Of a stretch of 64,000 bases of DNA, positions 3,573-56,696 are shown piece after piece. The notes beneath the pieces were generated by a model that ran no database searches, was not told the DNA's origin, and was given only the letters and a program-made list of their open reading frames with translations. The DNA lies in IMG/VR virus record IMGVR_UViG_3300035212_003113, positions 1 to 64,000 of that record; one strand, written 5' to 3'. The first letter of the stretch is position 1. Each line of letters opens with the position of its first letter. Made by a program: the position numbers and the translations under genes.

Positions 3573-3887
3573 ATGATTTCTCTACCATTTCATTCCATCA
3601 GCGAGCGACGCCCTAGCGACGGGCAAGAAGTGGCCTGGATTAGACGTGGAGCGGCATTTGGTTTTGATTCTTTCGAGATTCGCTATGATACCGCAGATTA
3701 TTGCTGGTTTGAACTAGGCGAAGATGGCGAGCACAACGGCACCCAGATCGGCTACAGCGGCGAAGAATCTCTTGAAGGTTGCCGCCTAGAAGTAATGTTC
3801 GGGAATGAAACCGCAGACCCGGAAACTCTCTGGTGTTCCATGGAAGAAATCTGGAAGATTCTTGACACAGAAAATCCGCAGCCGTGA
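3573..3887 (+). CDS. hypothetical protein
   Basis: ORF tiling between neighbours; start at second Met of track ORF. Confidence 0.7.
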   Translation: MISLPFHSISERRPSDGQEVAWIRRGAAFGFDSFEIRYDTADYCWFELGEDGEHNGTQIGYSGEESLEGCRLEVMFGNETADPETLWCSMEEIWKILDTENPQP

Positions 3888-4147
3888 AGCTGGATGACTG
3901 GGAGATGCGGGTCGCATTTGCTAAGGAAGACTGGCCGGAGGTTATTTCTATTATGGAATCTACCTTCGGTATCTCCCTGGTTGGCAGACCTACAAGAATC
4001 AATAGAGGCTTTTCTCAGTACCCAGAGATCTGGATCTGCATGCCACGCGGCGGCGCTGAATACGGTTGGTCAGGCCGATCCGGCTTTACCCAGGGACCGC
4101 TAGGCATTCCGATAGGCGAAGATATACAAATCTTTACCACAAAATAA
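3884..4147 (+). CDS. family A paralog
   Basis: MKLDDWEMRVAFAKEDW...TFG...YGW...GF. Confidence 0.8.
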   Translation: MKLDDWEMRVAFAKEDWPEVISIMESTFGISLVGRPTRINRGFSQYPEIWICMPRGGAEYGWSGRSGFTQGPLGIPIGEDIQIFTTK

Positions 4148-4160
4148 ATCAGGAGCAATC

Positions 4161-4634
4161 ATGCTGAGCAGCCGTACCCTCACGATCATGCGTGGCCTGC
4201 CCGGTAGCGGCAAGAGCCACCTCGCACACGCCCTTGCAAACATTCCCGGAGTTTCTCCCGCTCCGGTCTTCTCCACCGATGATTTCTTCATGGTGGATGG
4301 GGAGTACCGCTTTGACGGCAAGCTCCTCGGCAAACACCATGCGGCTAATCTGGCCCGTGCGGTTGCTGCTATGGATGCAGGAACTTCCCATATTATTATT
4401 GACAATACTAACACGCAGGCTTGGGAAGCCCGCGAGTATGTTCGTAACGCGGAGCGATGTGGATATCGCGTACAGTTTATTGAGCCTGCAACCGCATGGG
4501 CGCGAGATCCTGAAGAGTGTGCCCGCCGCAACTCTCATGGCGTACCGTTGCATGCTATTCGTAGTATGTTGGCCCGCTGGGAGACAGATCTGACTGTCGA
4601 GGCCTGCCTGGCAGCCAAGGCCCCCTGGGAATAA
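4161..4634 (+). CDS. P-loop kinase (AAA_33 / polynucleotide-kinase-like)
   Basis: MRGLPGSGKS Walker A, IIIDNTN, RNSHGVP motifs. Confidence 0.8.
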   Translation: MLSSRTLTIMRGLPGSGKSHLAHALANIPGVSPAPVFSTDDFFMVDGEYRFDGKLLGKHHAANLARAVAAMDAGTSHIIIDNTNTQAWEAREYVRNAERCGYRVQFIEPATAWARDPEECARRNSHGVPLHAIRSMLARWETDLTVEACLAAKAPWE

Positions 4635-4649
4635 TCAAGATAGAAAATC

Positions 4650-5036
4650 ATGAAACTTGATACCTGGGAAACTATTTCTTCAATCATTGAAGCCGGTGGT
4701 GTTTACAAAAACGGGTATTACTGCGTTCGCAACAGCAGGGGCCGGCTTCACCGGGATGACGGACCCGCTGCCATATATCCAGATGGTACTCAGTGTTGGT
4801 ACCAGGATGGCGGGCTTCACCGGGGTGATGGGCCAGCTATTATCTATCCAGATGGTACTCAATACTGGTGCCGGAATGGCAAGCGTCACCGGGATAACGG
4901 ACCAGCTATTATCTATCCAGATGGTACTCAGGAATGGTACAGGGCTGGACAGAGAGTGCCAGCCCCGCCCGCCCTAAAGCCGGACCCGCCCGATCCTGAG
5001 CGGTGCCCCGAACGCCACCAACAAGGAGCAATATGA
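4650..5036 (+). CDS. HRxDGPA-repeat protein (3 repeats)
   Basis: shared N-term plus repeats; C-term reads through motif copy 2. Confidence 0.85.
   Translation: MKLDTWETISSIIEAGGVYKNGYYCVRNSRGRLHRDDGPAAIYPDGTQCWYQDGGLHRGDGPAIIYPDGTQYWCRNGKRHRDNGPAIIYPDGTQEWYRAGQRVPAPPALKPDPPDPERCPERHQQGAI
4974..4999 (+). promoter_or_regulatory. motif copy 2
   Basis: CTAAA gccggacccgccc GATCCTGA. Confidence 0.6.
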
Positions 5037-5221
5037 ACAGCGCCAAGCGAATGTCTGATCTTTTTCTGAACGTCGTACTGATGCATGGCTTCCGCGAGAC
5101 GGATGAGCGCTTTTTCACAGCCTTCAATAACGGGGGCGACTTTGACCCGTTCGCGTTTGATGCCACCTATGACGTACTCATCGAGGACGTGCAGCGCTAT
5201 ATCCTCCCGCAGGAAGCATGA
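5033..5221 (+). CDS. hypothetical protein
   Basis: AAGGAG SD, ATGA overlaps. Confidence 0.65.
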   Translation: MNSAKRMSDLFLNVVLMHGFRETDERFFTAFNNGGDFDPFAFDATYDVLIEDVQRYILPQEA

Positions 5222-5454
5222 TGCTCACCATTATTGCTGCCCTTCTTGCCGGCGCTGTAGTAGGCCGCGTCACGGCAGCCCTGGCCGGAGAAACGATGAT
5301 CTCGAGCTACTGGATCTTCGTCATCGCCTGTCTCTGGCTGTTGGATCGCACGGTTGGTGTGACCATCACAGAGACGTGGCGAAGTGTTCTGGCTGAAAAG
5401 AGGCGCATCCGTGAAGAAGAAAGAGCACGGCACGCACTCGAGGGAGACGTATGA
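5218..5454 (+). CDS. small membrane protein
   Basis: two hydrophobic segments. Confidence 0.6.
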   Translation: MMLTIIAALLAGAVVGRVTAALAGETMISSYWIFVIACLWLLDRTVGVTITETWRSVLAEKRRIREEERARHALEGDV

Positions 5455-6911: not shown

Positions 6912-7118
6912 ATGAAACTATTTGCTGAATACCTACTGGTAGATAGGGATCGCAAGTTTGTGCTGAGATTTGGCAGCGACACGTCCTCTCATCACATGCT
7001 ACATATGCGGGATGTTTATAGCGTTATCTATAGGCATCTTGCCCCGCTGCACATAGCTGCGGTAGATGTATTAGGTGAGCTGCATGTTCTAGATCTGGAC
7101 CGGCATGAAGCTGATTAG
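6912..7118 (+). CDS. family B paralog
   Basis: MKLFAEY...DVLGEL. Confidence 0.7.
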   Translation: MKLFAEYLLVDRDRKFVLRFGSDTSSHHMLHMRDVYSVIYRHLAPLHIAAVDVLGELHVLDLDRHEAD

Positions 7119-7302
7119 CTTTTATCAGATACGCACCGACAGCGGCTTGCGCTACTCGCAAGTACACGGCTCACATACCCGCGAAGAGGCAATTTTAGAA
7201 TACCATAGACTGCAATGGTTTCAGGATCGTCCGCTGCGACTGTATGAAATAAGCGTGCTAGGCGATGAGCGCGACATAACTCCAGAGGGCTTTAGATCAT
7301 GA
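7105..7302 (+). CDS. family B paralog
   Basis: MKLISFY...SVLGDER; 14-nt overlap. Confidence 0.7.
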   Translation: MKLISFYQIRTDSGLRYSQVHGSHTREEAILEYHRLQWFQDRPLRLYEISVLGDERDITPEGFRS

Positions 7303-7548: not shown

Positions 7549-7758
7549 ATGAAGCTAATCAGTCACTATCTAGTATACGATAACCGCAATCTCCTGCGAG
7601 GAAGCATTCCACCGGAAAGGTTTACCACGCAAACCCGCGCGCAAATAACCGCATACTTCTTATCCGGTCTAGCCTACTTTGTTCGCAGACGCATGTTGCC
7701 TCTGCGCTTTATTGAGGTTAACGTACTAGGCGACCAGCGCGAGGTAAGTTTAGACTGA
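7549..7758 (+). CDS. family B paralog
   Basis: MKLISHY...NVLGDQR. Confidence 0.7.
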   Translation: MKLISHYLVYDNRNLLRGSIPPERFTTQTRAQITAYFLSGLAYFVRRRMLPLRFIEVNVLGDQREVSLD

Positions 7759-7967
7759 TGGAATCCCCACACGCCAGCAACATAGACTTCATGATAAAAG
7801 CTCTGGAGTCTAATCCAGATAAGAAGTTTATTGTTCTAGAAGGCAGCGGTCCCGGAGATACTCTGCTGATTGTCTGGCGGAGCGCCAACGAACGAGCGCC
7901 CGGACAATACTACGAGATCCGCGTTGCAGAGATCAAAGAAACTGCTTTCATTCAGGTGAGCAAATGA
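7758..7967 (+). CDS. hypothetical protein
   Basis: TGATG overlap. Confidence 0.6.
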   Translation: MESPHASNIDFMIKALESNPDKKFIVLEGSGPGDTLLIVWRSANERAPGQYYEIRVAEIKETAFIQVSK

Positions 7968-8272
7968 AACTGGACGCTTTCGCTTTGCGAAACGCTGTTG
8001 CAAACAAGGACATAAAAACAATCCTTGATTTGTTCGCAGTGCATTTTGAAGACATAGCCCGCCGGAAGGATGAGCAATGGCAAATAAAGATTTGTCCGTG
8101 GGAACCGCTAGGAATGCTGCGACTAAGAACATCTAGCGGATCTTCCTGCTGGAACGGCCTTGATTACTTCAATGACAGTAAGCTTTACTCTCGTAATGGG
8201 ATAAACCTCATTATGTTTGCCCCGGATTTCTGTAGTGAAACTTGTTCTATTGTTACTGGCACAACTAGATGA
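7964..8272 (+). CDS. family A paralog
   Basis: MKLDAFALRNAV...HF...CW. Confidence 0.7.
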   Translation: MKLDAFALRNAVANKDIKTILDLFAVHFEDIARRKDEQWQIKICPWEPLGMLRLRTSSGSSCWNGLDYFNDSKLYSRNGINLIMFAPDFCSETCSIVTGTTR

Positions 8273-8483
8273 CGCCGGCGATAAGACAGGCATGATTGCC
8301 GCCATAGCCCACTACTTTGGTATCCCTCTACCAAACAATGTCCGCGACATGCGCGACAAGGGAGATGCGTGGAGCCTGCTTGTGATTAGCTATGGCAACA
8401 ATTGCTATTATTTTTACGCTAATGGATCGTCTTCAGTTATTGATTTCAAAGCACCGCTAGATAATATAGGTACCATCTTCTAG
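8235..8483 (+). CDS. family A paralog (divergent)
   Basis: GTG MKLV...AHYFGI. Confidence 0.6.
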   Translation: MKLVLLLLAQLDDAGDKTGMIAAIAHYFGIPLPNNVRDMRDKGDAWSLLVISYGNNCYYFYANGSSSVIDFKAPLDNIGTIF

Positions 8484-8485
8484 CC

Positions 8486-8752
8486 ATGAAGCTACTTGAC
8501 CTCCAACTGGACGAAGCATTTGCTGTCCGTGATTATGACGGCATGGTGACGCTAGTTGCGCAGCACCTAAGCATACGGCTCCCAAGAGAGAGGGCGGCTA
8601 TAGATACATCTAGTCCCGGCAACTGGCGCTGGGGCCGAGTGGTTATTTATCAAGATGGCTCCCGCTATATCTATTGCCGTGGTGGTGGCAGTAGAACAAG
8701 TCCTACTGTTTCCATCTTTGATTGCGGAATCATATCAGAGTTGCCAAGATGA
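8486..8752 (+). CDS. family A paralog
   Basis: MKLLDLQLDEAF..RDY...HL. Confidence 0.7.
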   Translation: MKLLDLQLDEAFAVRDYDGMVTLVAQHLSIRLPRERAAIDTSSPGNWRWGRVVIYQDGSRYIYCRGGGSRTSPTVSIFDCGIISELPR

Positions 8753-9039
8753 AGCTAGAGTCGTATGCTATGCGCGAGGCGCTGGAGGCCGGAGATACGG
8801 CCACCGCTGTGCGCGTGCTTGCGACCTACTATGGCTTTCCTGATCCGGTAGAAATACCGATTACCGTAATCGGCAAAAACATGCCGCCTTTTGAAAGAGA
8901 AAGACGCCTGCTATTCTGGTGCGGCGACGACTTCTATGAGTGGAGTTCTGAGTCCGGCTTTGACCGGGGCGTGCATCCTTATTCCCTAGGCAGCGACGTA
9001 GCACCGAGCCGCATAGAAAGCATCATTCTTTGGAAATAG
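8749..9039 (+). CDS. family A paralog
   Basis: MKLESYAMREAL...YYG...YEW...GF. Confidence 0.8.
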   Translation: MKLESYAMREALEAGDTATAVRVLATYYGFPDPVEIPITVIGKNMPPFERERRLLFWCGDDFYEWSSESGFDRGVHPYSLGSDVAPSRIESIILWK

Positions 9040-9727: not shown

Positions 9728-10009
9728 ATGAAGCTACAGTCTATCTTAGTAGCTGAACGGCTTGCTTCCAACGATATGCGAGGCGCATGCAATGCCCTGC
9801 TAGCGAACTTCAACCTCAGTGATCTGCCCACAGGTGCAGAAGTAAGAGTAAATCCCAGCGAAGTTCATGGGGATCATATAATTATTTACACTGCTGGGCA
9901 CTGGTACGAGTGGGGCGAGCGCATGGGATTCAGGACTGGACTGTCTTCTAGTTTCAGCCTACCAGCTACCCGTGCTGTAATCTGGTTGCGGAAGAGGAAG
10001 CCGACATGA
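9728..10009 (+). CDS. family A paralog
   Basis: MKLQS...NFNL...YEW...GF. Confidence 0.75.
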   Translation: MKLQSILVAERLASNDMRGACNALLANFNLSDLPTGAEVRVNPSEVHGDHIIIYTAGHWYEWGERMGFRTGLSSSFSLPATRAVIWLRKRKPT

Positions 10010-10109: not shown

Positions 10110-10367
10110 ATGAAGCTAGACCGGTCTGCAATCATTCACGCCCTAGAGTCCGGCAACAATACAGGGGCCGTGCAAGTCTTGTTTCACTACTTCCGGCTTG
10201 GAGAAGTACCGGGGGATTTGCAAATAATAAGGCGCGTATCTCCTACTATGGAGATGATTTACTATAATGCGGAGTGGTATGGCTGGACAGCCGCACACGG
10301 CTTTCGCAAAAGCCGACTGCCACAAGTGCAAGATCCCCCGCTAGTACAGATATGGTTTCCGCTATGA
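10110..10367 (+). CDS. family A paralog
   Basis: MKLDRS...HYF...YGW...GF. Confidence 0.8.
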   Translation: MKLDRSAIIHALESGNNTGAVQVLFHYFRLGEVPGDLQIIRRVSPTMEMIYYNAEWYGWTAAHGFRKSRLPQVQDPPLVQIWFPL

Positions 10368-10651
10368 AGCTGGAATCCTATGTACTACAAAACGCTATCT
10401 ATGAAGGGCGGCACGAAGAAGCAGTCCGAGGTCTGCTGCAACATTTTGGCATAAACTTACCGGATGCACAGCTGAACATACAGGCAGCAACCGATTCATG
10501 TTATGGCATTTACGTATGGGTAAGCACTAAGTACTTTGAATGGTACGAGGGTAGCTTTTTCTCTGCAAGCTCTTATGTGAGAGGAACGCCATTGCGCGCA
10601 GAAGTAGTAATCGCAACGGTATGGATACGAAGCAAAAATGAAAATCTCTGA
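10364..10651 (+). CDS. family A paralog
   Basis: MKLESYVLQNAIYEG; close to 11566. Confidence 0.8.
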   Translation: MKLESYVLQNAIYEGRHEEAVRGLLQHFGINLPDAQLNIQAATDSCYGIYVWVSTKYFEWYEGSFFSASSYVRGTPLRAEVVIATVWIRSKNENL

Positions 10652-10832
10652 GTGGGCAGTACAGGATGCAGTAGACAGCGGAGACTTCTCCCGCATACTA
10701 CCCATTCTGATTGAGCATTATGGCGTAGGCAGGATTCCCGACTGGGCTGATCCGCAACACGAGCATCCACTTAGTTGCCGCATATGTCAGATGATCCGCC
10801 CTTGGTTGTTTGCAAAAATGGACAGCAAGTGA
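10638..10832 (+). CDS. family A paralog (short, lacks YxW-GF half)
   Basis: MKISEWAVQDAV...EHYG. Confidence 0.6.
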   Translation: MKISEWAVQDAVDSGDFSRILPILIEHYGVGRIPDWADPQHEHPLSCRICQMIRPWLFAKMDSK

Positions 10833-11083
10833 AACTAGATACCTGGGAAGCCGTATCTTCTCTCCTCGATGCCGGTGGTAAGTTTTTTATCGATAAGTAT
10901 TGCCTTGTAAATGACAAAGGTCACTATCATCGGGAAGACGGCCCAGCTGTCATATATCCTAATGGCGATCAGTTTTGGTTGCGCAACGATAAGCTTCACC
11001 GGGAAGACGGCCCGGCTGTCGTCTATTCAGATGGTAAAAAACATTGGTACCTGGATGGTCGACTCCAGCGGGCAGACAAATGA
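10829..11083 (+). CDS. HRxDGPA-repeat protein (2 repeats)
   Basis: GTG MKLDTWEAVSSLLDAGG. Confidence 0.85.
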   Translation: MKLDTWEAVSSLLDAGGKFFIDKYCLVNDKGHYHREDGPAVIYPNGDQFWLRNDKLHREDGPAVVYSDGKKHWYLDGRLQRADK

Positions 11084-11484
11084 AACTTGATATCTGGGGT
11101 GCAATAGATTCTATCCTTGAAGCTGGTGGAAAGTTTTATCAAGGAAAGTATGTCTTTCTAAATGATAATGGTGAGCTTCACCGGGAAGATGGGCCTGCTG
11201 TTATAGAGCCGGATGGTACTCAGGAGTGGTGCCGAAATAACAAGCTTCATCGTGATGATGGACCTGCTATTATATGCCCTGATGGTAGTCAATATTGGTA
11301 CCAGAATGGTGAGCTTCACCGGGATAAAGGTCCCGCTGTATTGTATCCAGATGGTAGTCAGCTTTGGTACCGGAATGGCGAGATTCATCGGGATGGCGGG
11401 CCTGCTGCCGTTTATCCGGATGGCACTCAGCTTTGGTACCGTAATGGCAAGAAGCGCCGTACCGGGCCGGGCAGCAAAGGATAA
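11080..11484 (+). CDS. HRxDGPA-repeat protein (4 repeats)
   Basis: MKLDIWGAIDSILEAGG. Confidence 0.85.
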   Translation: MKLDIWGAIDSILEAGGKFYQGKYVFLNDNGELHREDGPAVIEPDGTQEWCRNNKLHRDDGPAIICPDGSQYWYQNGELHRDKGPAVLYPDGSQLWYRNGEIHRDGGPAAVYPDGTQLWYRNGKKRRTGPGSKG

Positions 11485-11565: not shown

Positions 11566-11859
11566 ATGAAGCTGGAATCCTATGTACTGCAAAGCGCCAT
11601 CTACGAAGGCCAGTACGAAGAAGCGGTGCGCCTGCTGCTGCAACATTTCGGCATAAACTTACCAGGTGTGCAGCTCATCATACAGACCGAACATGATATA
11701 GGCTACGGCATTAGGGCTTGGGTTGGCTCAGATCCCTATGAATGGTATGAAGGTAATTTTTATTTTCCTGCGCCTGACTGGAACACTGACCGGGATTACA
11801 GCAGAGTAAAGATCGTAAGCGCTACGGTTTGGAGCAAGTACAAGCTCAAGAACTCATGA
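11566..11859 (+). CDS. family A paralog
   Basis: MKLESYVLQSAIYEG; close to 10364. Confidence 0.8.
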   Translation: MKLESYVLQSAIYEGQYEEAVRLLLQHFGINLPGVQLIIQTEHDIGYGIRAWVGSDPYEWYEGNFYFPAPDWNTDRDYSRVKIVSATVWSKYKLKNS

Positions 11860-13806: not shown

Positions 13807-14076
13807 GTGAAGCTGGCTGACTACGAGATTCGAGAAGCGCTATCCCGTAAAGATTGGTCCGCTGCTGTTGCCGCCCTCGCACGCCATTACGGGGTAGACA
13901 TGCCGCCTGAGTATAGGATGGACGTAATGCGCGGCGGGTCCTACGTGAAGACTTTCCAAGTAAAGATCTTTTCGCCCCATTGGATATATGCTTGGTGCGA
14001 GGAAAAAGGACTCCACTGCTGGGAGCGCCAGCACTCTCCCGTAGAACGGACATCAGCAGACATCTGGATTCGCTAG
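13807..14076 (+). CDS. family A paralog
   Basis: GTG MKLADYEIREALSRKDW...HYG...YAW. Confidence 0.8.
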   Translation: MKLADYEIREALSRKDWSAAVAALARHYGVDMPPEYRMDVMRGGSYVKTFQVKIFSPHWIYAWCEEKGLHCWERQHSPVERTSADIWIR

Positions 14077-27855: not shown

Positions 27856-27861
27856 ACCAGC

Positions 27862-32211: not shown

Positions 32212-32255
32212 GCGGCGACGGTCCCCGCCGCTATTTTAAATAGGACGCCTTCGCA

Positions 32256-43939: not shown

Positions 43940-43962
43940 TCTAATTGGTACCAGGCATATAC

Positions 43963-43990
43963 TGAATACCGGTCAGGTCGCCGGTATTCA
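43963..43990 (+). other. intercistronic hairpin
   Basis: TGAATACCGG/CCGGTATTCA 10-bp stem. Confidence 0.55.
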
Positions 43991-44020
43991 GATTTACTAA
44001 ACCCTTAACCAAGGAAGATT

Positions 44021-45187: not shown

Positions 45188-45189
45188 AT

Positions 45190-45432: not shown

Positions 45433-45439
45433 TCCTCGC

Positions 45440-45475
45440 GGGGAGGGCGGGTTGCTCCGCCCTCCCCTTTTTTAT
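45440..45475 (+). terminator. intrinsic terminator
   Basis: GGGAGGGCGG...CCGCCCTCCC then T run. Confidence 0.75.
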
Positions 45476-45488
45476 ATTAGGAGCCCGG

Positions 45489-45842
45489 ATGAAGCTATTA
45501 GATCAGGTTTTTAAAGTATATCCGCCAGCTGACTGGGCTGAACATTTGCCGCTACCGATGCCGCCATTATGGAGGGAAGCGACCGAAGACATTGCTACTG
45601 ACGAGATAGAAGTAGTCAACTGGAATTGCGGCTACCTGATGGTTGCCAAGTATTCGGCAGAAGATGCCGAGGAGCCATTTGTAAGCTACCGGGAGGCTAG
45701 CCCGCCTACGTCAGTAAGGATAACCTTTAAAGAGAATGTGCCCTGCGCTACTAAAAAGATTTTCAGCGAGAGCTTCTCTGGACGCACCATGCCTCACTCT
45801 TGTGGCTGCTGCATCACTCTATTTTACCCAGGAACAAAATGA
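45489..45842 (+). CDS. hypothetical protein (MKL start)
   Basis: AGGAG SD. Confidence 0.65.
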   Translation: MKLLDQVFKVYPPADWAEHLPLPMPPLWREATEDIATDEIEVVNWNCGYLMVAKYSAEDAEEPFVSYREASPPTSVRITFKENVPCATKKIFSESFSGRTMPHSCGCCITLFYPGTK

Positions 45843-46954
45843 AGATTTTTGAGAAGTCCAATAACGATCTCGGTTCTATTTATATCGTCTACGAGTCGCC
45901 TGTCAAGAACGAAGACCCACATCTGAAAGGTATGTCGCACCTGCTTGAGCACATGATCTGCTGCTCGCTGGACGATGTAGAGGAGCGGCTTGATCAGCAC
46001 TGCTTGACGTATAATGCTTATACCGGTGGTGATGAAGTAGTATTCTATCTGTCCGGCCTGAGCAGCGAGCTGGCCAAGTTCCGTGAGCTTTTCTTCGAGC
46101 GCATCCTGAGCTACCGTCCTACGCTGGAGCACTTCAACAAGGAAAAGAATATCGTCTTGCAGGAGTATGACGATGCCTATAGCGAGAGTGGCTTCTCCAG
46201 CTTTGCTAATTATTCAAGCGTTCGCTTTGGTTATGTAGGTCCGATTGGCGTTCGCTCTGCAATCGAGAGCGTAACGTTCGAGCAGATTTGTGATCTGCAT
46301 GCACGGGCTTTCTCGCGGCCATCAAAGGTTATCGTTGTAGACCAGAATGACGTAGATGTACAGACCGATTTTGCGGACACTAGCGCCTCGTCGTATACCG
46401 GTTATAAGCACGTTAATCACGAAGCACCAGTTGTGCCTAGCAGCATTAATGTTCTGAGCGCTTCGCCGCTACTGCCGTTGGACGGGGTATATCACCTGCA
46501 TATCGTTCAGTCTGTTCTGGGATACGGCCTTAAGAGCCCGCTTTATCAGGAGCTGCGCGAGAAGGCTTCGCTCTGTTATTGGGTATCTGCGGGTGGCTAT
46601 AAGATGAACGACGATCATATTATGGTCGTATCTACGTCTACGAAAGATACAAATGTGGCTCGCATCAAGGAATTGACACTGGACGTTCTCTCGAATCCCG
46701 AGCGCCATCTTACCCGTGATCGATTTGACATGATGATGCAGAATCGCCGCATCGCTAATAAGATTGCCGAGCAGAACCTTGCTGCTCATGCATACCGCAA
46801 GCATCTGAATTCGGCAAACGAGCGGGTGTCATTCCTGAAGAACATTGACAGGATTACTTATGAGTCTACGCTTGATTACTTCAACCGGAACCTGAATCCG
46901 CGCAACGTCGCATGGGAGCAGGTAGATGACCGAGATGTCCGTCAGATGAGCTGA
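45839..46954 (+). CDS. M16 family (insulinase-like) zinc peptidase
   Basis: HLLEH inverted motif, YNAYT, EKNIVLQE, LYQELREK..LCY. Confidence 0.85.
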   Translation: MKIFEKSNNDLGSIYIVYESPVKNEDPHLKGMSHLLEHMICCSLDDVEERLDQHCLTYNAYTGGDEVVFYLSGLSSELAKFRELFFERILSYRPTLEHFNKEKNIVLQEYDDAYSESGFSSFANYSSVRFGYVGPIGVRSAIESVTFEQICDLHARAFSRPSKVIVVDQNDVDVQTDFADTSASSYTGYKHVNHEAPVVPSSINVLSASPLLPLDGVYHLHIVQSVLGYGLKSPLYQELREKASLCYWVSAGGYKMNDDHIMVVSTSTKDTNVARIKELTLDVLSNPERHLTRDRFDMMMQNRRIANKIAEQNLAAHAYRKHLNSANERVSFLKNIDRITYESTLDYFNRNLNPRNVAWEQVDDRDVRQMS

Positions 46955-47025: not shown

Positions 47026-47337
47026 ATGAAATTAGATCACTTCGAAGCACGCAGTCATGCGCTAGAGCAGTTCGGGCGTCCTGCGTTTGAATGTACTGCG
47101 TGGACTGCGTGGCGGCCATCCCGCAATGATTGTGGCATAGAGCTAATCCTGCGGCCTGATGGCCTGTTCTGCTTCGGCATAAATGGTAATCGCGGCTTTG
47201 CTTTTCGTGCCGATTATAGCAAGCTAACGGCTGCAAATCTCCGGAGTATTGCCTGGAGCACCGGCTTTAGTTGGACGGTGGCGGATGAGCTGGCCAGTAA
47301 GTTTGGCTGCGTAGTGGACCCGACCCGTGAAGCTTAG
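47026..47337 (+). CDS. family C-like protein
   Basis: MKLDHFE...DYSKLT. Confidence 0.6.
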   Translation: MKLDHFEARSHALEQFGRPAFECTAWTAWRPSRNDCGIELILRPDGLFCFGINGNRGFAFRADYSKLTAANLRSIAWSTGFSWTVADELASKFGCVVDPTREA

Positions 47338-47638
47338 AGACTGGGAGACGACGCAGCTCCTCACCGCCTTACTAGGAGCAGAGGAAGACGCCTATCTCGG
47401 AATAGCCAGCAGCAGCTTGAATGTGCGCAAGTGGATTGTGCGTCCTGGTTTCACGATCTATCAGAAAGGCGACGAGATCTGCATAGGGGTAGATGGCCTG
47501 CTAGGCAGTTACTTTGTACCCAGTCTGGATAAGATTACGGCAGAATCTATCGCAAAGGTTGGCCGAATGATAATAGATGCCTCTCTTGATGATGACGGCT
47601 GGGGTGATCCGCTTATCGCAGAGCGAGCTTTTACCTAG
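47327..47638 (+). CDS. family C paralog
   Basis: WIVRPGFTIYQ...YF.P.LDKIT; matches 31868. Confidence 0.75.
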   Translation: MKLRDWETTQLLTALLGAEEDAYLGIASSSLNVRKWIVRPGFTIYQKGDEICIGVDGLLGSYFVPSLDKITAESIAKVGRMIIDASLDDDGWGDPLIAERAFT

Positions 47639-47646
47639 TAGGGCAG

Positions 47647-47958
47647 ATGAAACTAGAATCATATGAAATGCGACAAGCATTCCTTGCCAACGACATAGCT
47701 GCTGTCATAAGTACCGCGGAAAAGGTTTTTCAAATTACTGCTCCGGCAAGCGCAAAGGCAAATGCAGCTATCTACACTGGTACTATCTTTAATTACGCGA
47801 TTGATATCTTCCTAGACAATGGCATACGAAGAATGCGTTATGTTTGGTATGAGTACGAGGGCTTCTTCTCTGTCAGGGTACCAGGACTTCTTGCATCCGC
47901 CGCCTACCGCAATACTCCTCTTATAAGAATCTGGCGAAAAACTGATGAAGCTGCTTGA
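47647..47958 (+). CDS. family A paralog
   Basis: MKLESYEMRQAF...YVW...GF. Confidence 0.8.
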   Translation: MKLESYEMRQAFLANDIAAVISTAEKVFQITAPASAKANAAIYTGTIFNYAIDIFLDNGIRRMRYVWYEYEGFFSVRVPGLLASAAYRNTPLIRIWRKTDEAA

Positions 47959-48235
47959 CTTCCAAATCCGGTCGGCACTTGCTGAGCACTCATGGGATGA
48001 GGCTGCTCGCTTACTAGCCGGCGCATTCGCAGAAAAATTCCCACAATTTAATTGTGAGAGCGCAATAGATGGTGCAAGCTTCTGCACTACGCCTAACGCT
48101 GGCAAGCTGCTCGAGGTACAGATCCGGTACCGACATGATGTTATCTTTTGGCAGAATGGCAAGACGGGATTCTACCACTATCCTGTTAACTATGTCACGC
48201 CCATGGTACTGATATTCGCGCCTGGCTGCCTATAG
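47945..48235 (+). CDS. family A paralog
   Basis: MKLLDFQI...SW...FW...GF. Confidence 0.8.
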   Translation: MKLLDFQIRSALAEHSWDEAARLLAGAFAEKFPQFNCESAIDGASFCTTPNAGKLLEVQIRYRHDVIFWQNGKTGFYHYPVNYVTPMVLIFAPGCL

Positions 48236-48236
48236 G

Positions 48237-48491
48237 CTAGCGCTTCTTCTCGCTTATCTTAAGCAGGATGTATGTTCCTATGATGCTGCCAACTACACTG
48301 AACGGCAGCATGCGATTATCGCCTACATATGCCAGGGTAATCCCTGAGTTAACCAGGCCCAATAGGCCGCTTGATAGCGCAGCCTTTATAGCATCGCCTT
48401 CGCCTATACGCCGAATGGTGTATGCCCATACTGCATTGGCGGCACAACTTAGAACAAGAATTCCGACGGCTTTGAGGCACAGCATTGACAT
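48237..48491 (-). CDS. small multi-pass membrane protein
   Basis: three hydrophobic segments; start at MSMLC. Confidence 0.6.
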   Translation of the reverse strand: MSMLCLKAVGILVLSCAANAVWAYTIRRIGEGDAIKAALSSGLLGLVNSGITLAYVGDNRMLPFSVVGSIIGTYILLKISEKKR

Positions 48492-48529
48492 TGTAAATTC
48501 CAGCGATAGAGAATGGGATCGGTGTCTGC

Positions 48530-48817
48530 ATGAAGCTAGACGACTATCGGATGCGACAACTATTGAATGCTGGAGAGTGGCAAGATGCACTTAGGCTGCT
48601 GGCAGAAGTTCATTCGCTTCCTGAGCTAGACTATCCGCTAAAAATCAATTTTATAGAGGCGGATGAACCCGATGATTTTGGCATCAGCCTTTATCATGCC
48701 GGCTACTATTATGACTGGGTTGCTGATAGCGGTGGCTTCTGGGGTCCGTGGCCAGCCAACATTCCGGTAGGCTCGCATGGCATATGCCGATTGCCCGCAG
48801 GCTGGAAGAAGGAATAA
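48530..48817 (+). CDS. family A paralog
   Basis: MKLDDYRM...EW...YDW...GF. Confidence 0.8.
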   Translation: MKLDDYRMRQLLNAGEWQDALRLLAEVHSLPELDYPLKINFIEADEPDDFGISLYHAGYYYDWVADSGGFWGPWPANIPVGSHGICRLPAGWKKE

Positions 48818-48819
48818 CC

Positions 48820-49227
48820 ATGAGCACGCTATTCAATCCTGAATGGGCAAAACGCAACGGCGAATGGGTGCTTGCATCCGCGCAACATATCGGCAAAGTG
48901 GCAGTACAGATTGCGCGAGACTACAGCTGGGCAGTATTCGGCATTGCGGATGGCGGGCAGGTAGCAGGCGGGACTGTGTCAGATTACATAGAAGCTTTTG
49001 CTGCGGCAGAAGCAGTCATGGGCTATAAGTACCTGCTTGATCCAGAATACGAAATGGATGCCGGCTGTCGCTGCGGTTCTTGTACCAGTCCTACTGGCAG
49101 GTGGATTGTATCTAATCGTGCAGATACGGTAGAAGAATATTTTAACAGCGAGGGCGAGGCAGTCGCCTGGATATTGGAGCAACATGGGTCCGCACTACCT
49201 GATGCAAGCCGGCGGGGTGATGAGTGA
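48820..49227 (+). CDS. hypothetical protein
   Basis: AAGGA SD. Confidence 0.6.
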   Translation: MSTLFNPEWAKRNGEWVLASAQHIGKVAVQIARDYSWAVFGIADGGQVAGGTVSDYIEAFAAAEAVMGYKYLLDPEYEMDAGCRCGSCTSPTGRWIVSNRADTVEEYFNSEGEAVAWILEQHGSALPDASRRGDE

Positions 49228-49906
49228 AGAAAAAATACTTATTGCCGCATCTGACAACAGGTACAGCCATGTTCCGTACGCAGACCTGCATCGCGTTGCC
49301 GTCAGGAGCGAAACAGTACCTGTCGGATCAGTAGAGTTTGTCCGGCGCTACGCAGAGATAAATGATGTTGTTCTGCCGCAGCTACCTACCTATCCTGCCG
49401 CACTAAACCATTATCTAGGTCGGCTAGTATGGCGCTGTCGGTATGCTGACGTACCAGCGGATGCCTTTTGCAAACCACTGCGAACAAAACTTTTTACCGG
49501 CGGCATCCGCTCTACCATTACGGAGACTGTGCCTGACGAAGAGATCGTCTTGGCAGCAGAATCCGTAGCATTTGATGCAGAGTTTCGATACTACATATTA
49601 GACGGCAGGATTATTGGCCACTCCAGGTATGACGCCGGAGATGAGCCGGCTGAGCCTGATCCGGCAGTGGTGCAGGCAATGGTTCGTGATTATGCCGATG
49701 CCCCTTGCGGGTATGCGCTTGATGTAGGTATTTGCGGCGGCAAGACGCTGCTCGTAGAGGTAAACGACGGCTGGTCTATTGGCTACTACCGCTGGGGCGA
49801 CATGAAGCCGCGAGCCTACATGGATCTGATCTCTGCTCGCTGGCAGGAAATACTTGCCGAGCAGACGGGGGCGGTCGGGCCTAAAACCGCCGGGTCGCGA
49901 TCATGA
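49220..49906 (+). CDS. ATP-grasp domain protein (DUF4343-type)
   Basis: FCKP..KLFTG, EFRYYI, YALDVG, LVEVND. Confidence 0.75.
   Translation: MSEEKILIAASDNRYSHVPYADLHRVAVRSETVPVGSVEFVRRYAEINDVVLPQLPTYPAALNHYLGRLVWRCRYADVPADAFCKPLRTKLFTGGIRSTITETVPDEEIVLAAESVAFDAEFRYYILDGRIIGHSRYDAGDEPAEPDPAVVQAMVRDYADAPCGYALDVGICGGKTLLVEVNDGWSIGYYRWGDMKPRAYMDLISARWQEILAEQTGAVGPKTAGSRS
49881..49906 (+). promoter_or_regulatory. motif copy 15 (variant)
   Basis: CTAAA accgccgggtcgc GATCATGA. Confidence 0.55.
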
Positions 49907-49922
49907 TGCGCCGAGGTTGCCA

Positions 49923-50228
49923 TTGAAGCTGCTGAGCTATGCTATCAAGTCTGCCATAGACGAGGCGCGCTGGGAAGATTCCTTGCAATTGCTGCTCAAC
50001 AGCTTTGGCCTAGAGCTGCCGTCTGCCACAAGGATAAGAGTACTAGGCGTCATATTCAATGACCCGGATATTCGCATGTGCGCGCATGATAGCATGTATG
50101 GCTGGAATCCGCACTCTGGAGCAATGCTCCTTTATAAAACAAGGCTGAAAATTTCACCTTATGCAGACATAACAGTCAAAAGCAGCGTGCCAATAATCTA
50201 TGGAACTCCACAACTTTGGAATCGCTGA
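49923..50228 (+). CDS. family A paralog
   Basis: TTG MKLLSYAI...RW...FGL...YGW. Confidence 0.75.
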   Translation: MKLLSYAIKSAIDEARWEDSLQLLLNSFGLELPSATRIRVLGVIFNDPDIRMCAHDSMYGWNPHSGAMLLYKTRLKISPYADITVKSSVPIIYGTPQLWNR

Positions 50229-50360
50229 AGCCCTAGGCGAAAGTCGCTGGACAGACTGCATGCCGGGCTTAAAGAAGCCTGTTGGTTTGAAACTGGCGAA
50301 ACCACATTATTATCCAGATCTCACGAGCTATACTCTGCTTATGTGTTCCTTAAGTAAAAT

Positions 50361-50621
50361 ATGAAGCTCGATAATTATCAAATGCTTGAGGCATTTCACG
50401 AAGAGAACTGGCGGAGCGCCATAGCTATGCTGAGGCAGCACTTCTGTCTGGAATCGCCCCCGCATCTTTGCTACGAGGTGCTAGAGCACGAACACCATGC
50501 TGAGTGCGTAGAGATCAGACAGGATAACGTGATCTATTATTGGCATGAATGCGATGGGTTTACGAATTCACGCAAGCTACCGACAACGAATGCAACGCTT
50601 ATATATTGCAGGCCGCCGTAG
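50361..50621 (+). CDS. family A paralog
   Basis: MKLDNYQM...NW...HF...YYW...GF. Confidence 0.8.
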   Translation: MKLDNYQMLEAFHEENWRSAIAMLRQHFCLESPPHLCYEVLEHEHHAECVEIRQDNVIYYWHECDGFTNSRKLPTTNATLIYCRPP

Positions 50622-50675
50622 AGTAAGTAACAGCAACAGTTTGGTGCGCGTACTATTGCGAACCAGCGAGGTAAT

Positions 50676-51050
50676 GTGATGACAGCAGAGGACATTAAAA
50701 GCGCAGATTTGTGCCCTGTTACAGTTACGGAAGAAGCTCTGCTGCAATTCCGGGCAGCCTATTCTGCGGACCCAGGTCCCGATGTCTTTGGCATTAGGAT
50801 CGGCGTAAAGGGCGGTGGTTGCTCTGGATTCATGCACAATCTTGAGTTCATCAAACGGGCGGATGTCGACCCGGAAGAAGATTCCATTTATCTTGTGGGC
50901 GGGCTACACTTTGTAATCGACTGCTTCAGCGAGCCGTATTTAAAAGGCACTACGGTTGACTATCTGCGCACACTACAAGAAAGCGGCTTCAAGTTCCGTT
51001 CTGACGAGATCCGGCGCACATGTGGTTGCGGCGCTTCTTTTTCCAAGTGA
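50676..51050 (+). CDS. iscA: HesB/IscA-family Fe-S cluster assembly protein
   Basis: GVKGGGCSG and CGCGASF motifs. Confidence 0.9.
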   Translation: MMTAEDIKSADLCPVTVTEEALLQFRAAYSADPGPDVFGIRIGVKGGGCSGFMHNLEFIKRADVDPEEDSIYLVGGLHFVIDCFSEPYLKGTTVDYLRTLQESGFKFRSDEIRRTCGCGASFSK

Positions 51051-51346
51051 AGCTGGCATCGTATCTCATGCGAGAAGCCTTTGATGCCCAAGACTGGGAC
51101 AGTGTAATTTCTATTTTAATAGATCATTTCGGCTTACAAAGCGCAACACAACTAATCCAATCTTCGGCGCCTAAACTAGGTACTGGTTACTGGGACACTG
51201 CATTTATCTACATGGGCAAATCGAAATACTGCTGGAATTCCTATTGTGGCTTTTATCGCGGTATTGTATTTAATAGCTCAGGCCTTGACGCATTCGTGTG
51301 TATTGCCAAGGGGATAGGCGACGTCCCTCACACGGTTAGCAAATGA
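51047..51346 (+). CDS. family A paralog
   Basis: GTG MKLASYLM...DW...HFGL...YCW...GF. Confidence 0.8.
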   Translation: MKLASYLMREAFDAQDWDSVISILIDHFGLQSATQLIQSSAPKLGTGYWDTAFIYMGKSKYCWNSYCGFYRGIVFNSSGLDAFVCIAKGIGDVPHTVSK

Positions 51347-51627
51347 AGCTAGCATCTTATGCGATAGCCGATGCTATTGAGAGAAGAGACTGGCTAGGCG
51401 CAGCGAGATGCCTCGCAGATCATTTTGGCATAACTGGCTCTCTCCCGCCTCTTGAGCAGATAAAGCTAAAGGTGGATTGCGATACGGGCAACGTATGCTG
51501 CATGAGTATATCAGTTGGGCATCGCATCTATTATTGGGAAGAGGGCGGATGCTTTGAGGGCGGCCTCCTGCGCTACCCACGAGAAGTTCCTAGCATTTTT
51601 ATAGAGTGCCGCAATGAAAATACTTGA
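51343..51627 (+). CDS. family A paralog
   Basis: MKLASYAI...DW...HFGI...YYW. Confidence 0.8.
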   Translation: MKLASYAIADAIERRDWLGAARCLADHFGITGSLPPLEQIKLKVDCDTGNVCCMSISVGHRIYYWEEGGCFEGGLLRYPREVPSIFIECRNENT

Positions 51628-51880
51628 CTATGCTGTAGCAGATGCACTCTCCCGCAGGTCATGGCAGGAAGCTCTGCGAATACTGTTTCTTAATTTTAAT
51701 CTCGATCCTAACGGTGCCTCTTCTATTTTCATAGAAGAGTATGTCGCCAGGCGCCCTAGTGTGGCCTACCACGACGGCAATCGCATTTACTCGTGGACAG
51801 AGGGCTTTGGCTGGAAATGTTCTGATGGATGGACCAGTGGTCGACCGCGAGCATGGATCAAGATACCGAAAACCAAATGA
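51614..51880 (+). CDS. family A paralog
   Basis: MKILDYAV...SW...YSW...GF. Confidence 0.8.
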   Translation: MKILDYAVADALSRRSWQEALRILFLNFNLDPNGASSIFIEEYVARRPSVAYHDGNRIYSWTEGFGWKCSDGWTSGRPRAWIKIPKTK

Positions 51881-52176
51881 AACTCAACCATTACCGGATG
51901 ATTTGCGCGTTCGAGAGCAAAGACTGGAAAAGTGCTGTCGCGATCCTAGTGGATCAGTTCAAGCTTACAGGCATTAGCCAGGTACAGCTAGAGCATTATC
52001 CTGTTGTTCGTTTTCCAGGTTACCGAGAAATATTTCTTACTTTGCCTGGTCATCAGGGCTATTCTTGGATGCCAGAGGATTCTTTCATCAGTGAGATCTG
52101 TGGACCGGTTACCTGCCCCACGGTCAGCCTATGGTACCCGTCATCAGTAAGGCATAGTGAGGTTCTAGATCTTTGA
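51877..52176 (+). CDS. family A paralog
   Basis: MKLNHYRM...DW...YSW. Confidence 0.8.
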   Translation: MKLNHYRMICAFESKDWKSAVAILVDQFKLTGISQVQLEHYPVVRFPGYREIFLTLPGHQGYSWMPEDSFISEICGPVTCPTVSLWYPSSVRHSEVLDL

Positions 52177-56000: not shown

Positions 56001-56300
56001 GGCGTAGAGAGCATTGCTGGTGCCAGCGGCATCATAGACCTTGTCGATCCAGCTGGTAGCGCTCCAGTATCAAGCGGACCTCTTGGTCTAGCTGGAGGCG
56101 CAGACCAGGTGCCAGGAGTTCTAGGAATTGCTGTAGTAGGAAATGCAGTATCTGTATCGGTTCCTGCCGGCACAGTTTCGGCAGACCTGGTAACGGCACT
56201 TAATGCGAACGCGCCATTTGCTGCGCTGGCGGTTGCTTCGGCATCGGATGCAGATCCGGTCGAAACAACTGGTACGGTTACGCTATCTGGCGGCCAGTGA
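53010..56300 (+). CDS. large Ala/Ser/Thr-rich protein with three LamG (ConA-like) domains, putative virion appendage
   Basis: three xFTIEAW...WxHxAVxRSxG modules; GGAGG SD. Confidence 0.8.
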   Translation: MTMIFDPVMLDPMPGDRSGGPAYASGSIGNMLYTAAMAGSDGNLIGVTHNLAPATSAVAASLSIDGMTYRARNAGVGGNSITVQHSSAAIAAIAAGATIGGIAYTAISSGAAGNNISVTASLGSAAVAGTATLNRSIPSLGVDWPFTITDKPAYYGVPTTVRLMGSSIETPSAALPATGVNDPYFANTPILVRAGSTSTVINNNTFRDSSTNALTVSRTGNVQQGTFSPHTKPDGYWSTFFSSSSDYMSVTDNVAFTFTGDFTIEAWISPTVAASQSIVSHWQSGLATGCSFALHLTATNALRFSYGIGPTNLAIESAASAITLNQWSHVAVSRSGTSLMMFVNGQLVNSTTASGSLNNCPNPLYIGTTTTDFFRGYISNLRLVKGTAVYTGAFSVPTSPLTAVSGTSLLTCQSNNVFDRSSNGFTITASYAKVLPIGPFASPEYTVATNGASAYFDGVGDLAAISDNNAFTLSGNFTIEAWIYADLSTGAAAEQTIAAHWLSASAIASSFILATTSTTGVKFTYAVGSTTATLTGAAGSLRSSAWNHVAVTRSSGSIRLFANGRQVASGFSASALNNSTSNLTLGYRTSTETFYLKGYVSDFRVINGSAAYTAAFAVPTAPLTVAPSTALLLSFANAEIQNLGGLSNIETAGSTISWSIGNKYNSKSVYFDGVGDYLSIGPVNNPHLAIGTADFTIEAWIYRTAGGSGFPALYANYGGSRSGAHLLRIIGPTNKAAFYVYPSTDVVTSTSDIALNTWTHIAVSRSGSNTYLYVNGVLEASSTTAYTLTSDPLHPATSGGYWQSAAIEPNGYFTGRIEDLRVTVGVARYEGATSVTRELSGSTEIVRFPNNTSVNQILAVVGDGGTNVSSRVSISATPSTATLSFTDPASNPGATTSGGSSAAPLSVAVTGSDISITLSASGSTSAEVCTLLTNTASTAALVSATPSVESASAAAKTFLSGGVNASAGVLAASASGDAVSISVPVGTTNVELKSFLEGVESIAGASGIIDLVDPAGSAPVSSGPLGLAGGADQVPGVLGIAVVGNAVSVSVPAGTVSADLVTALNANAPFAALAVASASDADPVETTGTVTLSGGQ

Positions 56301-56315
56301 AGCCAAGCTGATTAC

Positions 56316-56350
56316 TAAAAGGCGGCGGCTAGTCCGCCGCCTTTTTATTT
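56316..56350 (+). terminator. intrinsic terminator
   Basis: AAAAGGCGGCGG-CTAGT-CCGCCGCCTTTTT. Confidence 0.75.
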
Positions 56351-56372
56351 GCACTTGGCAGCGGGGGCGGCC

Positions 56373-56398
56373 CTAAAGCCGGACCCGCCCGATCCCGT
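56373..56398 (+). promoter_or_regulatory. motif copy 16 (variant)
   Basis: CTAAA gccggacccgccc GATCCCGT gtgg CGA. Confidence 0.6.
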
Positions 56399-56432
56399 GT
56401 GGCGACCGCCGCGCCCTATGCCGGAGCCTATT

Positions 56433-56696
56433 GTGAAACTACTTGATTATGAGATAGGCGAAGCTGCGACCGCAGGCTCTACTTTGGACATGGTGCGCAT
56501 AGCTGCGCGATACATGGGCCTTAATGCTAATGCCGCCAGTCTAGAAGTTAAAAGAAGCAGATACTTAATAGACCTGCGGGATTGGACAAGGATAGAGATT
56601 CCCTGCGGAGATACCATCCATATACTTTATACAGATGGATTCATTCGCAGAATAAAAAACGATGGCTGTGTCTCTGCTCTTATATCTGGGTGGTAA
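56433..56696 (+). CDS. family A paralog (divergent)
   Basis: GTG MKLLDYEIGEAA...YMGL. Confidence 0.7.
   Translation: MKLLDYEIGEAATAGSTLDMVRIAARYMGLNANAASLEVKRSRYLIDLRDWTRIEIPCGDTIHILYTDGFIRRIKNDGCVSALISGW

Follow-up and report, generated by a model that had tools for sequence, protein, structure and literature searches.

An old and unusually large family of small orphan proteins in an uncultivated huge phage and its possible role as a repertoire of binders

Why would a phage give so much of its genome to dozens of versions of one small protein? The question is raised by the first 64 kilobases (kb) of IMG/VR virus record IMGVR_UViG_3300035212_003113 (371,675 bp), the stretch analyzed here and referred to as the window, in which an initial annotation, made from the letters alone, had pointed to about 43 diverged paralogs of an unrecognized protein of some 90 residues, here termed family A. 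Family A is real, old and specific to its lineage, a multigene family in the genome of an uncultivated huge phage (~372 kb). For a phage the number of copies is exceptional, and to our knowledge no comparably large expansion of a single family of small proteins has been described in one. An independent assembly of the same genome in ENA is 371,689 bp long and starts at another position than the IMG/VR version, and the differing origins of the two suggest that the genome is complete, and circular or circularly permuted or terminally redundant.

The copies were counted with a hidden Markov model (HMM) seeded with seven of those first annotated and run iteratively, with convergence in three rounds, against the 412 open reading frames (ORFs) of at least 50 residues in the window. 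It retrieved 41 plus-strand ORFs with E-values of 2e-27 to 2e-8, no minus-strand or decoy match, and one weak extra copy, a 54-residue ORF at 50200–50364 (E 0.002); a six-frame search with the HMM added a 43rd, the fragment 30875–30946, in which a stop codon follows after about 25 codons. When each ORF was trimmed to the start codon aligned with the first residue of the profile, the 42 genes other than the fragment were found to encode 54–112 residues (median 95) and to sum to 11,760 nucleotides (nt). The annotated number and footprint of about 12 kb were therefore borne out, as were the annotated consensus, which was reproduced with MAFFT, and the three runs of copies at 7964–9039 (four copies), 27586–32878 (14 copies) and 47647–52176 (10 copies). 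All 43, of which about 39 are intact and four degraded, lie on the plus strand from 3884 to 56696, and they take up ~18% of the window. Two more are present in the following 9.5 kb, at window-equivalent positions ~69.9 and ~71.5 kb, and none in the 10 kb preceding the window, so that over the window and these two flanks the genome holds at least 45.

Homology among the members does extend past the first few residues, with different kinds of evidence for the two parts of the protein. When profiles were made from residues 1–33 of half of the members, 20–21 of the other 21 scored E<1e-3 and no decoy did. Profiles of the C-terminal part recovered only 1–5 of 21, and there the relationship is carried by a [YFW]xW motif, which 31 of the 42 members have but only 5 of 52 decoys of matching size, and by a tryptophan, W61. 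Across 142 sequences of the wider family described below, to which the conservation figures given here refer, W61 is 99% conserved, on a par with M1 and K2 (M1, K2 and L3 are at 93–99%); F67 is at 86%, A11 and A20 at 85%, Y59 at 83%, F28 at 81%, G66 at 76% and I86/W87 at ~50%, with position 8 mostly M, I or L and E10 at only 44%. The C-terminal motif and the constancy of W61 argue that homology is over approximately residues 1–87. The conserved set consists of L3, Y6, A11, D16-W17, A20, L24, H27-F28-G29, alternate strand residues, Y59, W61 and G66-F67, and conservation along the strands alternates (50/52, 59/61, 84/86), the loops and the intervening positions being below 0.7 bits.

AlphaFold2 modeling of the member at 29631–29942 with the 42-sequence alignment gave a mean predicted local distance difference test (pLDDT) value of 91.2 and a predicted template modeling score of 0.80, with helices at residues 2–13 and 17–28 and strands at 37–42, 49–54, 57–62, 66–71 and 82–88, in agreement with the helical N-terminus and beta-like C-terminus that had been annotated. 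In the predicted scaffold an N-terminal hairpin of two helices packs against an antiparallel sheet of five strands. The alternation along the strands, rather than the model coordinates, suggests that the conserved residues form a buried core and that variation is tolerated in the loops and on the side of the sheet that faces outward. The modeling supports a common fold well in typical members, and for outliers such a fold is only probable. The annotated description of the N-terminus as constant is right in so far as that part is the more conserved, with 29% versus 15% identity among paralogs and a pooled ratio of nonsynonymous to synonymous substitution rates (ω) among orthologs of 0.15 for residues 2–33 versus 0.51 for the remainder, but the MKL with which it starts is common to other families throughout the region and the invariant tryptophan sits in the C-terminal sheet. 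Isoelectric points range from 4.3 to 9.5 (median 6.2), and since a transmembrane-like segment is present in no member, membrane or secreted proteins were rejected; the products are predicted to be small (~90 residues), soluble and cytoplasmic.

How widely is the family distributed? When 1.84 billion cluster representatives were searched exhaustively with the family profile, 291 proteins (clusters at 50% identity) scored E<=1e-3, 67 of them at E<=1e-10, nearly all full-length at 84–111 residues and metagenomic in source throughout. Among 148 short sequences retrieved, 127 start with MKL and 105 are less than 50% identical to any member in the window. Fourteen long matches (1,000–2,500 residues) proved to be Ig/PKD tandem-repeat surface proteins in which weak 'YxW...G' hairpin matches had been summed, and they are not homologues. 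Arrays are also found on the gene-dense strand of related phage contigs, with 16 copies in 19 kb in the one designated L009, 11 in 16 kb in L008, seven to eight in L004 and L005, and five in L011.

The annotation of the family as unrecognized was confirmed. No member had a match at the curated cut-off of Pfam (42 window and 142 wider members), none of the 142 matched PHROGs or NCBIfam, none of the 42 matched PADLOC, and comparison of family profiles, and of members with phmmer, to PDB sequences gave nothing significant; tblastn of two members against 50,697 GenBank phage records also yielded no match. Foldseek comparison of the AlphaFold2 model with the PDB and BFVD gave best E-values of 0.24–0.28 with template modeling scores of at most 0.35, the best PDB match (E 0.28) being to an unrelated protein. 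Family A is new to the databases searched, and its predicted fold is without a detectable neighbor in the PDB or BFVD.

One sub-threshold hint deserves comment. Residues 18–76 of the protein encoded by 29631–29942 resemble Pfam SMI1_KNR4 (E 9.3e-5) and SUKH_6 (E 0.0096), and its language-model neighbors in the Atlas are almost all short (86–93 residues) SUKH clusters, with a score of 0.92. This raises the possibility that family A is a minimized and very divergent branch of the SUKH (SMI1/KNR4) proteins that, in the manner of bacterial poly-immunity arrays, neutralizes nuclease or deaminase toxins, here effectors of host abortive infection or polymorphic toxins. MORN-type repeats occur in YwqK-type antitoxins, and the presence of an expanded MORN-variant family in the same window could be viewed in this light. 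So could the finding that SUKH immunity proteins bind structurally diverse partners and have been recruited by DNA viruses (PMC3113570). However, matches to the SUKH clan at E<=0.01 are confined to one of the 42 window members and two of the 142 wider ones, which are near-identical orthologs of each other, and all are below the Pfam cut-off (the best SMI1_KNR4 score is 23.5 bits and the cut-off 25.4). No solved SUKH protein, such as YobK (2prv) or Syd (3ffv), was found at E<=10 with the family profiles or with phmmer against the PDB, the Foldseek comparison was equally empty, and two other paralogs, 10364 and 42044, have no SUKH language-model neighbors in the Atlas. (Structure-based Atlas neighbors were disregarded, the Atlas models having pLDDT values of 0.39–0.51.) The modeled two helices and five strands also differ from the SUKH core of four helices and six strands (PMC3113570), and no toxin domain is present among the ~20 neighboring proteins scanned, most of the small ones being unannotated. 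With the signal coming from a single member, below threshold, and with a different complement of helices and strands, membership of SUKH was rejected, and a toxin-neutralizing role of that type is improbable.

A second borderline match bears on whether the proteins could be nucleic-acid binders, either small winged-helix-like regulators or nucleoid-associated proteins. The wide-family profile aligns over positions 5–85 with F-112 of SSV1 (2vqc), a viral winged-helix protein, and the two resemble each other superficially in having helices ahead of a beta hairpin. The E-value of 0.039 is not significant, though, and in the model only two helices precede the sheet, the third (recognition) helix being absent; no winged-helix protein was among the Foldseek matches, the isoelectric points are not uniformly basic, and forty-odd regulators of the same type in one phage are implausible. 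The winged-helix class was not accepted, and a nucleic-acid-binding role is very unlikely.

Several lines of evidence bear on the age of the repertoire. The closest paralogs, 10364 and 11566, are only 58% identical and the median is 29%. The three pairs that had been annotated as recent (10364/11566, 27586/27862 and 31323/31597), at 58%, 46% and 43% identity, have to be regarded as old, and on sequence divergence the copies in general are old. The best paralog of a copy is its physical neighbor in eight cases where two are expected (P 0.0015), and so tandem duplication contributed. The best match is in the fragment of another phage for 25 of the 42 window members, for 9 of 11 in L008, 13 of 16 in L009 and all seven in L004, from which it follows that the repertoire is mostly older than the split of these phages. 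Recent amplification of the 'genomic accordion' type was rejected on the same grounds, the 58% identity of the closest pair and the location of most best matches in other genomes. Loss is ongoing, since four copies are decaying.

In every ortholog pair that could be aligned ω is between 0.12 and 0.53, and the genes are therefore functional and under purifying selection. That needs to be set against the idea that no copy has a function of its own and that early regions prone to duplication gave rise to the arrays as a neutral or selfish by-product. The decaying copies, the lack of a known function and the tolerance of the region for other expansions could be cited for this idea. Besides the ω values, the near-invariance of the core residues over ~290 clusters, the retention of most paralog lineages in different phage genomes and the intactness of reading frames at 15–30% identity all speak for selected genes, and a functionless array is highly unlikely.

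Selection notwithstanding, the family diverges fast. In comparisons of related contigs with the window, the median best-hit identity is 36.8% for 43 family genes and 59.9% for 115 other genes (Mann-Whitney p 1.2e-6). For 41776 the positional ortholog in L009 is 47% identical, as against 65–79% for its immediate neighbors. In L008 the products of three genes are 92% (AAA+), 98% (DUF2201) and 84% (M16) identical to their window counterparts, and those of the family genes at most 46%. In the window these three genes form a cluster at 42776–46954, a conserved island within a hypervariable region. The initial annotation had considered that family members might be substrate adaptors for the products of the AAA+ and protease genes. 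The MoxR-type AAA+ gene (42776–43939), the DUF2201/vWA gene (44021–45187) and the M16 peptidase gene (45800–46954) are indeed inside the range of family A, and one or two copies are directly upstream of the AAA+ gene, with upstream copies also in L008 and L009. But only two of the 43 copies adjoin the cluster and the other 41 do not, the module is 84–98% conserved and the adjacent copies at most 47%, the reverse of the pattern expected from partners that co-evolve, the copies in L011 are near RNA-repair genes instead, and family A is without a motif known for binding AAA+ proteins or proteases. Adaptors or regulators of this module are thus very improbable, and there is little in favor of that part of the annotated suggestion.

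The other part of that suggestion, a repertoire of inhibitors or adaptors in a more general sense, fits a core that is conserved under a surface that varies, rapid divergence and birth-and-death evolution, and is the reading preferred here. The repertoire was built long ago by tandem duplication and is kept by purifying selection, with copies lost to decay and with divergence much faster than that of neighboring genes. Its arrays are co-oriented and belong to the accessory portion of the genome, where tRNAs and further expanded families of small proteins are also found. Each paralog might bind its own partner by way of its variable face, and jointly the paralogs may serve as stoichiometric binders or inhibitors of host proteins in takeover, most plausibly of host defence or toxin effectors. 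We infer, at close to even confidence but short of it, that family A is a repertoire of binders or inhibitors that has diversified for use in host takeover or counter-defence. The multigene families of large eukaryotic DNA viruses are among its closest functional analogies. So are the bacterial SUKH poly-immunity arrays (PMC3113570) and the T-even internal proteins (PMC3012670), the latter a precedent for small and diverse phage inhibitors of defence with nothing but a short conserved N-terminus in common. A bolder version, in which a previously undescribed fold serves a lineage of huge phages as a germline-encoded library of binders, at least 45 paralogs per genome having the same rigid helix-hairpin and beta-sheet scaffold but different exposed faces, each paralog directed against a different host effector and some perhaps delivered with the DNA, is possible but distinctly more doubtful.

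There are points that weigh against such a role and these need to be kept in mind. No homology to known anti-defence, immunity or inhibitor families was found in the databases searched. As ω is below 1 even in the variable part, relaxed constraint explains the difference in rate between the two parts equally well as diversifying selection. That most copies are old and have been kept across phages fits stable, distinct functions of any kind and not necessarily an arms race. The timing of expression is not shown by the promoters, sigma-70-type candidates in the largest array numbering 7 against 8.2 expected from shuffled sequences, i.e. not above background. Finally, for the most divergent intact member, 56433–56696, AlphaFold2 gave the two helices at pLDDT 86–89 and the sheet at only ~50–57.

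The MKL start is a puzzle of its own. MK[LIF] begins 79 plus-strand ORFs of at least 50 residues in the window, 39 of them outside family A and from several unrelated families, and 14 of the 75 non-family called genes begin with MKL; with other families starting alike, MKL was rejected as a signature of family A. Alignment of these other families to family A with hhalign covers only 15–26 N-terminal residues, with probabilities of 22–68%, and the shortness of these matches rules them out as hidden members, the product of 47026–47337 alone being a possible distant relative. The K2 codon is AAG in 29 cases and AAA in 11, L3 is encoded by four CTN codons, and the DNA repeats in the arrays are at coding starts only; with that synonymous variation and no repeats elsewhere, a signal at the DNA or RNA level was rejected. 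An A-rich second codon can favor translation initiation, and the region-wide preference could reflect translation efficiency or a shared N-terminal signal.

A shared signal is central to a further alternative, namely that the products are packaged in the capsid and ejected, as are the internal proteins of phage T4, with MKL and the first helix as a capsid-targeting leader. The spread of the start over unrelated families and the conservation of K2 and L3 as amino acids despite synonymous codons are what such a leader might produce, and many members have [MIL]-x-E-A at residues 8–11, which is like the T4 prohead protease site. The T-even internal proteins are diverse small inhibitors of defence that have an N-terminal targeting sequence alone in common (PMC3012670). 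E10, however, present in just 44% of members, would be poor for a cleavage site, helix 1 (pLDDT 92–97 in the model of 29631–29942) is integral to the predicted fold and not a detachable leader, eighty distinct cargo proteins would be unprecedented, and the other MKL families align over too few residues and with non-significant probability; moreover, the second codon may simply aid initiation. Packaging by means of an MKL leader is accordingly not a likely explanation.

Translation is also relevant to how the genes are arranged. Of 42 copies, 23 overlap the stop codon of the gene upstream, 13 by ATGA, six by exactly 14 nt and two by 11 nt, and these start/stop overlaps imply that translation is coupled inside operon-like runs. 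Genes with a 14-nt overlap include those starting at 10638, 27586, 42044, 47945 and 51614; there the ATG-AAR-CTN start, read in the upstream frame, gives that protein a tail such as ..NENL, ..DEAA or ..READ before its stop codon.

The individual copies, with the number of residues encoded and the profile E-value in brackets, are as follows, starting at the left of the window. The first, 3884–4147 (87; 1.1e-20), has a GTG start and an L001 ortholog that is 91% identical (ω 0.38). In the first run, 7964–8272 (102; 6.8e-14) belongs to a divergent subgroup together with 32591, 8235–8483 (82; 5.8e-11) has a GTG start and overlaps the upstream copy by 38 nt, and 8486–8752 (88; 6.1e-17) is overlapped through ATGA by 8749–9039 (96; 3.7e-24). 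Then come 9728–10009 (93; 1.1e-22), with an L004 ortholog 75.5% identical (ω 0.35), 10110–10367 (85; 1.1e-18), with orthologs 61–62% identical (ω 0.12–0.19), and 10364–10651 (95; 2.6e-25), whose orthologs are 76–79% identical (ω 0.38–0.53) and whose closest paralog is 11566–11859 (97; 6e-20). Between the last two is 10638–10832 (64; 2.4e-8), a truncated copy with the N-terminal part only and without the sheet motif; it matches profile positions 12–43 and 87–101 only, and its L004 counterpart is 89% identical. Four single copies follow: 13807–14076 (89; 1.6e-25; GTG start), 16844–17122 (92; 9.5e-21), the sole intact copy to start with MNS and not MK[LIF], 17930–18229 (99; 4.2e-15; GTG start) and 22075–22386 (103; 2.7e-17).

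The largest run opens with 27586–27855 (89; 2e-19), which is 46% identical to its neighbor 27862–28152 (96; 1.8e-17), and continues with 28812–29099 (95; 7.8e-19), 29096–29386 (96; 2.6e-20) and 29383–29634 (83; 8.4e-20), the latter two with ATGA overlaps. Next is the modeled member, 29631–29942 (103; 2.2e-27), the sole one with the SUKH-like hint. Its C-terminal tail is encoded by one copy (29910–29941) of a 32-nt G+C-rich repeat whose other copy (32179–32210), 81% identical to the first, is intergenic and just 5′ of a terminator-like hairpin at 32212–32231. After 29964–30257 (97; 3.8e-17) and 30259–30561 (100; 3.4e-22) comes a frameshifted pseudogene, 30615–30873 (E 1.7e-10 for the first frame); three-frame reading places the N-terminal part in the frame of 30615 and the sheet motif in the +1 frame until the stop codon ending at 30873. 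The adjacent fragment 30875–30946 has the first 24 residues and then a stop (E 7.2e-6, profile positions 1–24). The run is completed by 31323–31607 (94; 4.3e-25; TTG start), 43% identical to 31597–31878 (93; 1.5e-23), which has a GTG start and an 11-nt overlap, and by 32256–32594 (112; 1.4e-18) and 32591–32878 (95; 1.3e-14), joined by an ATGA overlap.

Between this run and the third there are two pairs, 38915–39202 (95; 2.5e-15) with 39199–39498 (99; 7.4e-18; ATGA overlap), and 41776–42057 (93; 2e-20; TTG start), the copy whose L009 positional ortholog was mentioned above, with 42044–42337 (97; 7e-25; GTG start, 14-nt overlap), the last before the AAA+ gene. The third run opens with 47647–47958 (103; 4e-20) and 47945–48235 (96; 9.7e-18; 14-nt overlap), followed by 48530–48817 (95; 2.5e-21), 49923–50228 (101; 1e-19; TTG start) and the degenerate 50200–50364 (54; 0.0022), which starts MEL and has the N-terminal part only (profile positions 12–44). 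Its remainder is made up of 50361–50621 (86; 2.4e-25; ATGA overlap), 51047–51346 (99; 8.2e-22; GTG start), 51343–51627 (94; 2.4e-24; ATGA overlap), 51614–51880 (88; 8.9e-21; 14-nt overlap) and 51877–52176 (99; 1.5e-23; ATGA overlap). An R2K-clade ATP-grasp gene, 49184–49906 (PF18299, E 4e-25), is inside this run. The last copy in the window is the divergent 56433–56696 (87; 4.8e-12), with a GTG start and no YxW motif. Two possible very distant relatives were not counted, 47026–47337 (hhalign over 57 columns, probability 66%) and 24502–24786 (32 columns, 54%, with an '..EFGADLP..' motif).

Nearly all genes in the window are on the plus strand. Other than family A it has five tRNAs, the MoxR-type AAA+, DUF2201/vWA and M16 peptidase genes, the R2K ATP-grasp gene, a PP-loop ATPase gene and one for a Laminin-G protein of 1,096 residues with matches to phage structural proteins. 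Megablast did not find a close cultured phage, the AAA+ gene is less than 30% identical to that of any GenBank phage, and a scan of cellular genomes with the DUF2201 protein did not reveal a close relative. A tRNA with anticodon CAT (18388–18465) is directly 5′ of the TilS-type PP-loop ATPase gene (18507–19139; PF01171, E 5e-33), and the pair suggests a phage tRNA-Ile2 with its own lysidine synthetase. Directly beyond the window, at 10519–14362 of L014 (window-equivalent ~63.5–67.3 kb), is an RNA-repair-like set with a SpoU methylase, a T4 Rnl1-type RNA ligase, a second RNA ligase, DUF7178 and a cREC_REC domain protein. The set is conserved in L011, where the related 90-kb contig encodes a ClpS homologue too.

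Family A is not the only expanded family there. A MORN-variant or DUF6745-like family of at least 10 copies has an N-terminus of the type 'MKLDxWEAISSL..AGG' followed by 'HREDGPA' repeats; its members match Pfam DUF6745 (E down to 7.5e-11) and MORN_2, and copies are also present in L001, L004 and L005. In the window they are at 30–494, 484–951, 959–1282, 1279–1575, 1572–1967, 1968–2495, 2496–2843, 4650–5036, 10829–11083 and 11080–11484, with variants at 61928–62227 and 62214–62528. Three small paralog groups with MKL or MKI starts are interleaved with the arrays of family A: one at 28139–28498, 31868–32173 and 47327–47638, a second at 21553–21873 and 28495–28815, and a third at 6912–7118, 7105–7302, 7549–7758 and 21354–21566. 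With hhalign they align to family A over the first 10–26 residues only.

The allocation of so large a share of 64 kb to one orphan family is a large investment that selection has maintained, and defining the family would allow annotation of several hundred metagenomic protein clusters that Pfam, PHROGs and NCBIfam miss. The occurrence of the MKL start in several unrelated families of small proteins across the region is a separate matter for work on translation or targeting. If the proteins are binders or inhibitors of host proteins, every paralog would offer a ready-made probe of some target in host defence or takeover, and this in a system without cultures. Binders could be engineered on the scaffold, which is compact and combines a conserved core with a surface that is free to change. 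It would then also be the case that huge phages enlarge their genomes in part through multigene host-interaction repertoires, as giant eukaryotic viruses do.

Of known systems, the SUKH proteins (SMI1/KNR4, Syd, US22) are akin to family A in being small, cytoplasmic and alpha+beta, in occurring as tandem arrays of diverged paralogs, and in having an N-terminal helix that ends in a hydrophobic-G-x-x-P type motif before the strands. Their partners are diverse, and large DNA viruses have recruited them, for instance as the US22 multigene family (PMC3113570). Family A differs in being shorter, with two helices and five strands, in having no structural or profile match to solved SUKH proteins, and in the lack of a toxin domain among the ~20 neighboring proteins scanned. 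A parallel of another kind is provided by the T-even internal proteins IPI, IPII and IPIII and their variable IP locus, also small, highly diverse between related phages and with a conserved N-terminus; mature IPI*, with 76 residues, inhibits a host restriction enzyme and has a compact structure of helix plus sheet (PMC3012670). The T4-type trait of hypervariable gene content between related phages is seen in family A as well (medians of 37% versus 60%, with flanking conserved genes at 84–98%). The differences are that T4 has a handful of internal proteins rather than 43, that its leader is a cleaved signal of 10 residues whereas the N-terminal 30 residues of family A are part of the predicted fold, with the candidate cleavage glutamate at 44%, and that there is no similarity in sequence or fold.

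Tandem gene multiplication in phage accessory regions, as in family A, is also a feature of amplified anti-defence loci, where segmental amplification is promoted by a homing endonuclease and linked to immune evasion (PMC13096335). Those amplifications are recent, near-identical and act by dosage, in contrast to family A with its closest pair at 58% identity and most of its lineages older than the split of the related phages. The MGF110, MGF360 and MGF505 multigene families of African swine fever virus, the US22 family of herpesviruses and the host-range families of poxviruses counter host defence in their known roles and vary in copy number as well as content between strains. They share with family A a set of diverged paralogs, numbering in the tens, that is arrayed in one orientation within the accessory region of a large viral genome, even though they are from eukaryotic viruses and their proteins are unrelated, and family A is known from its genes alone. 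Should family A prove to be a library of binders, it would be the phage counterpart of the host-evasion multigene families of the large eukaryotic DNA viruses.

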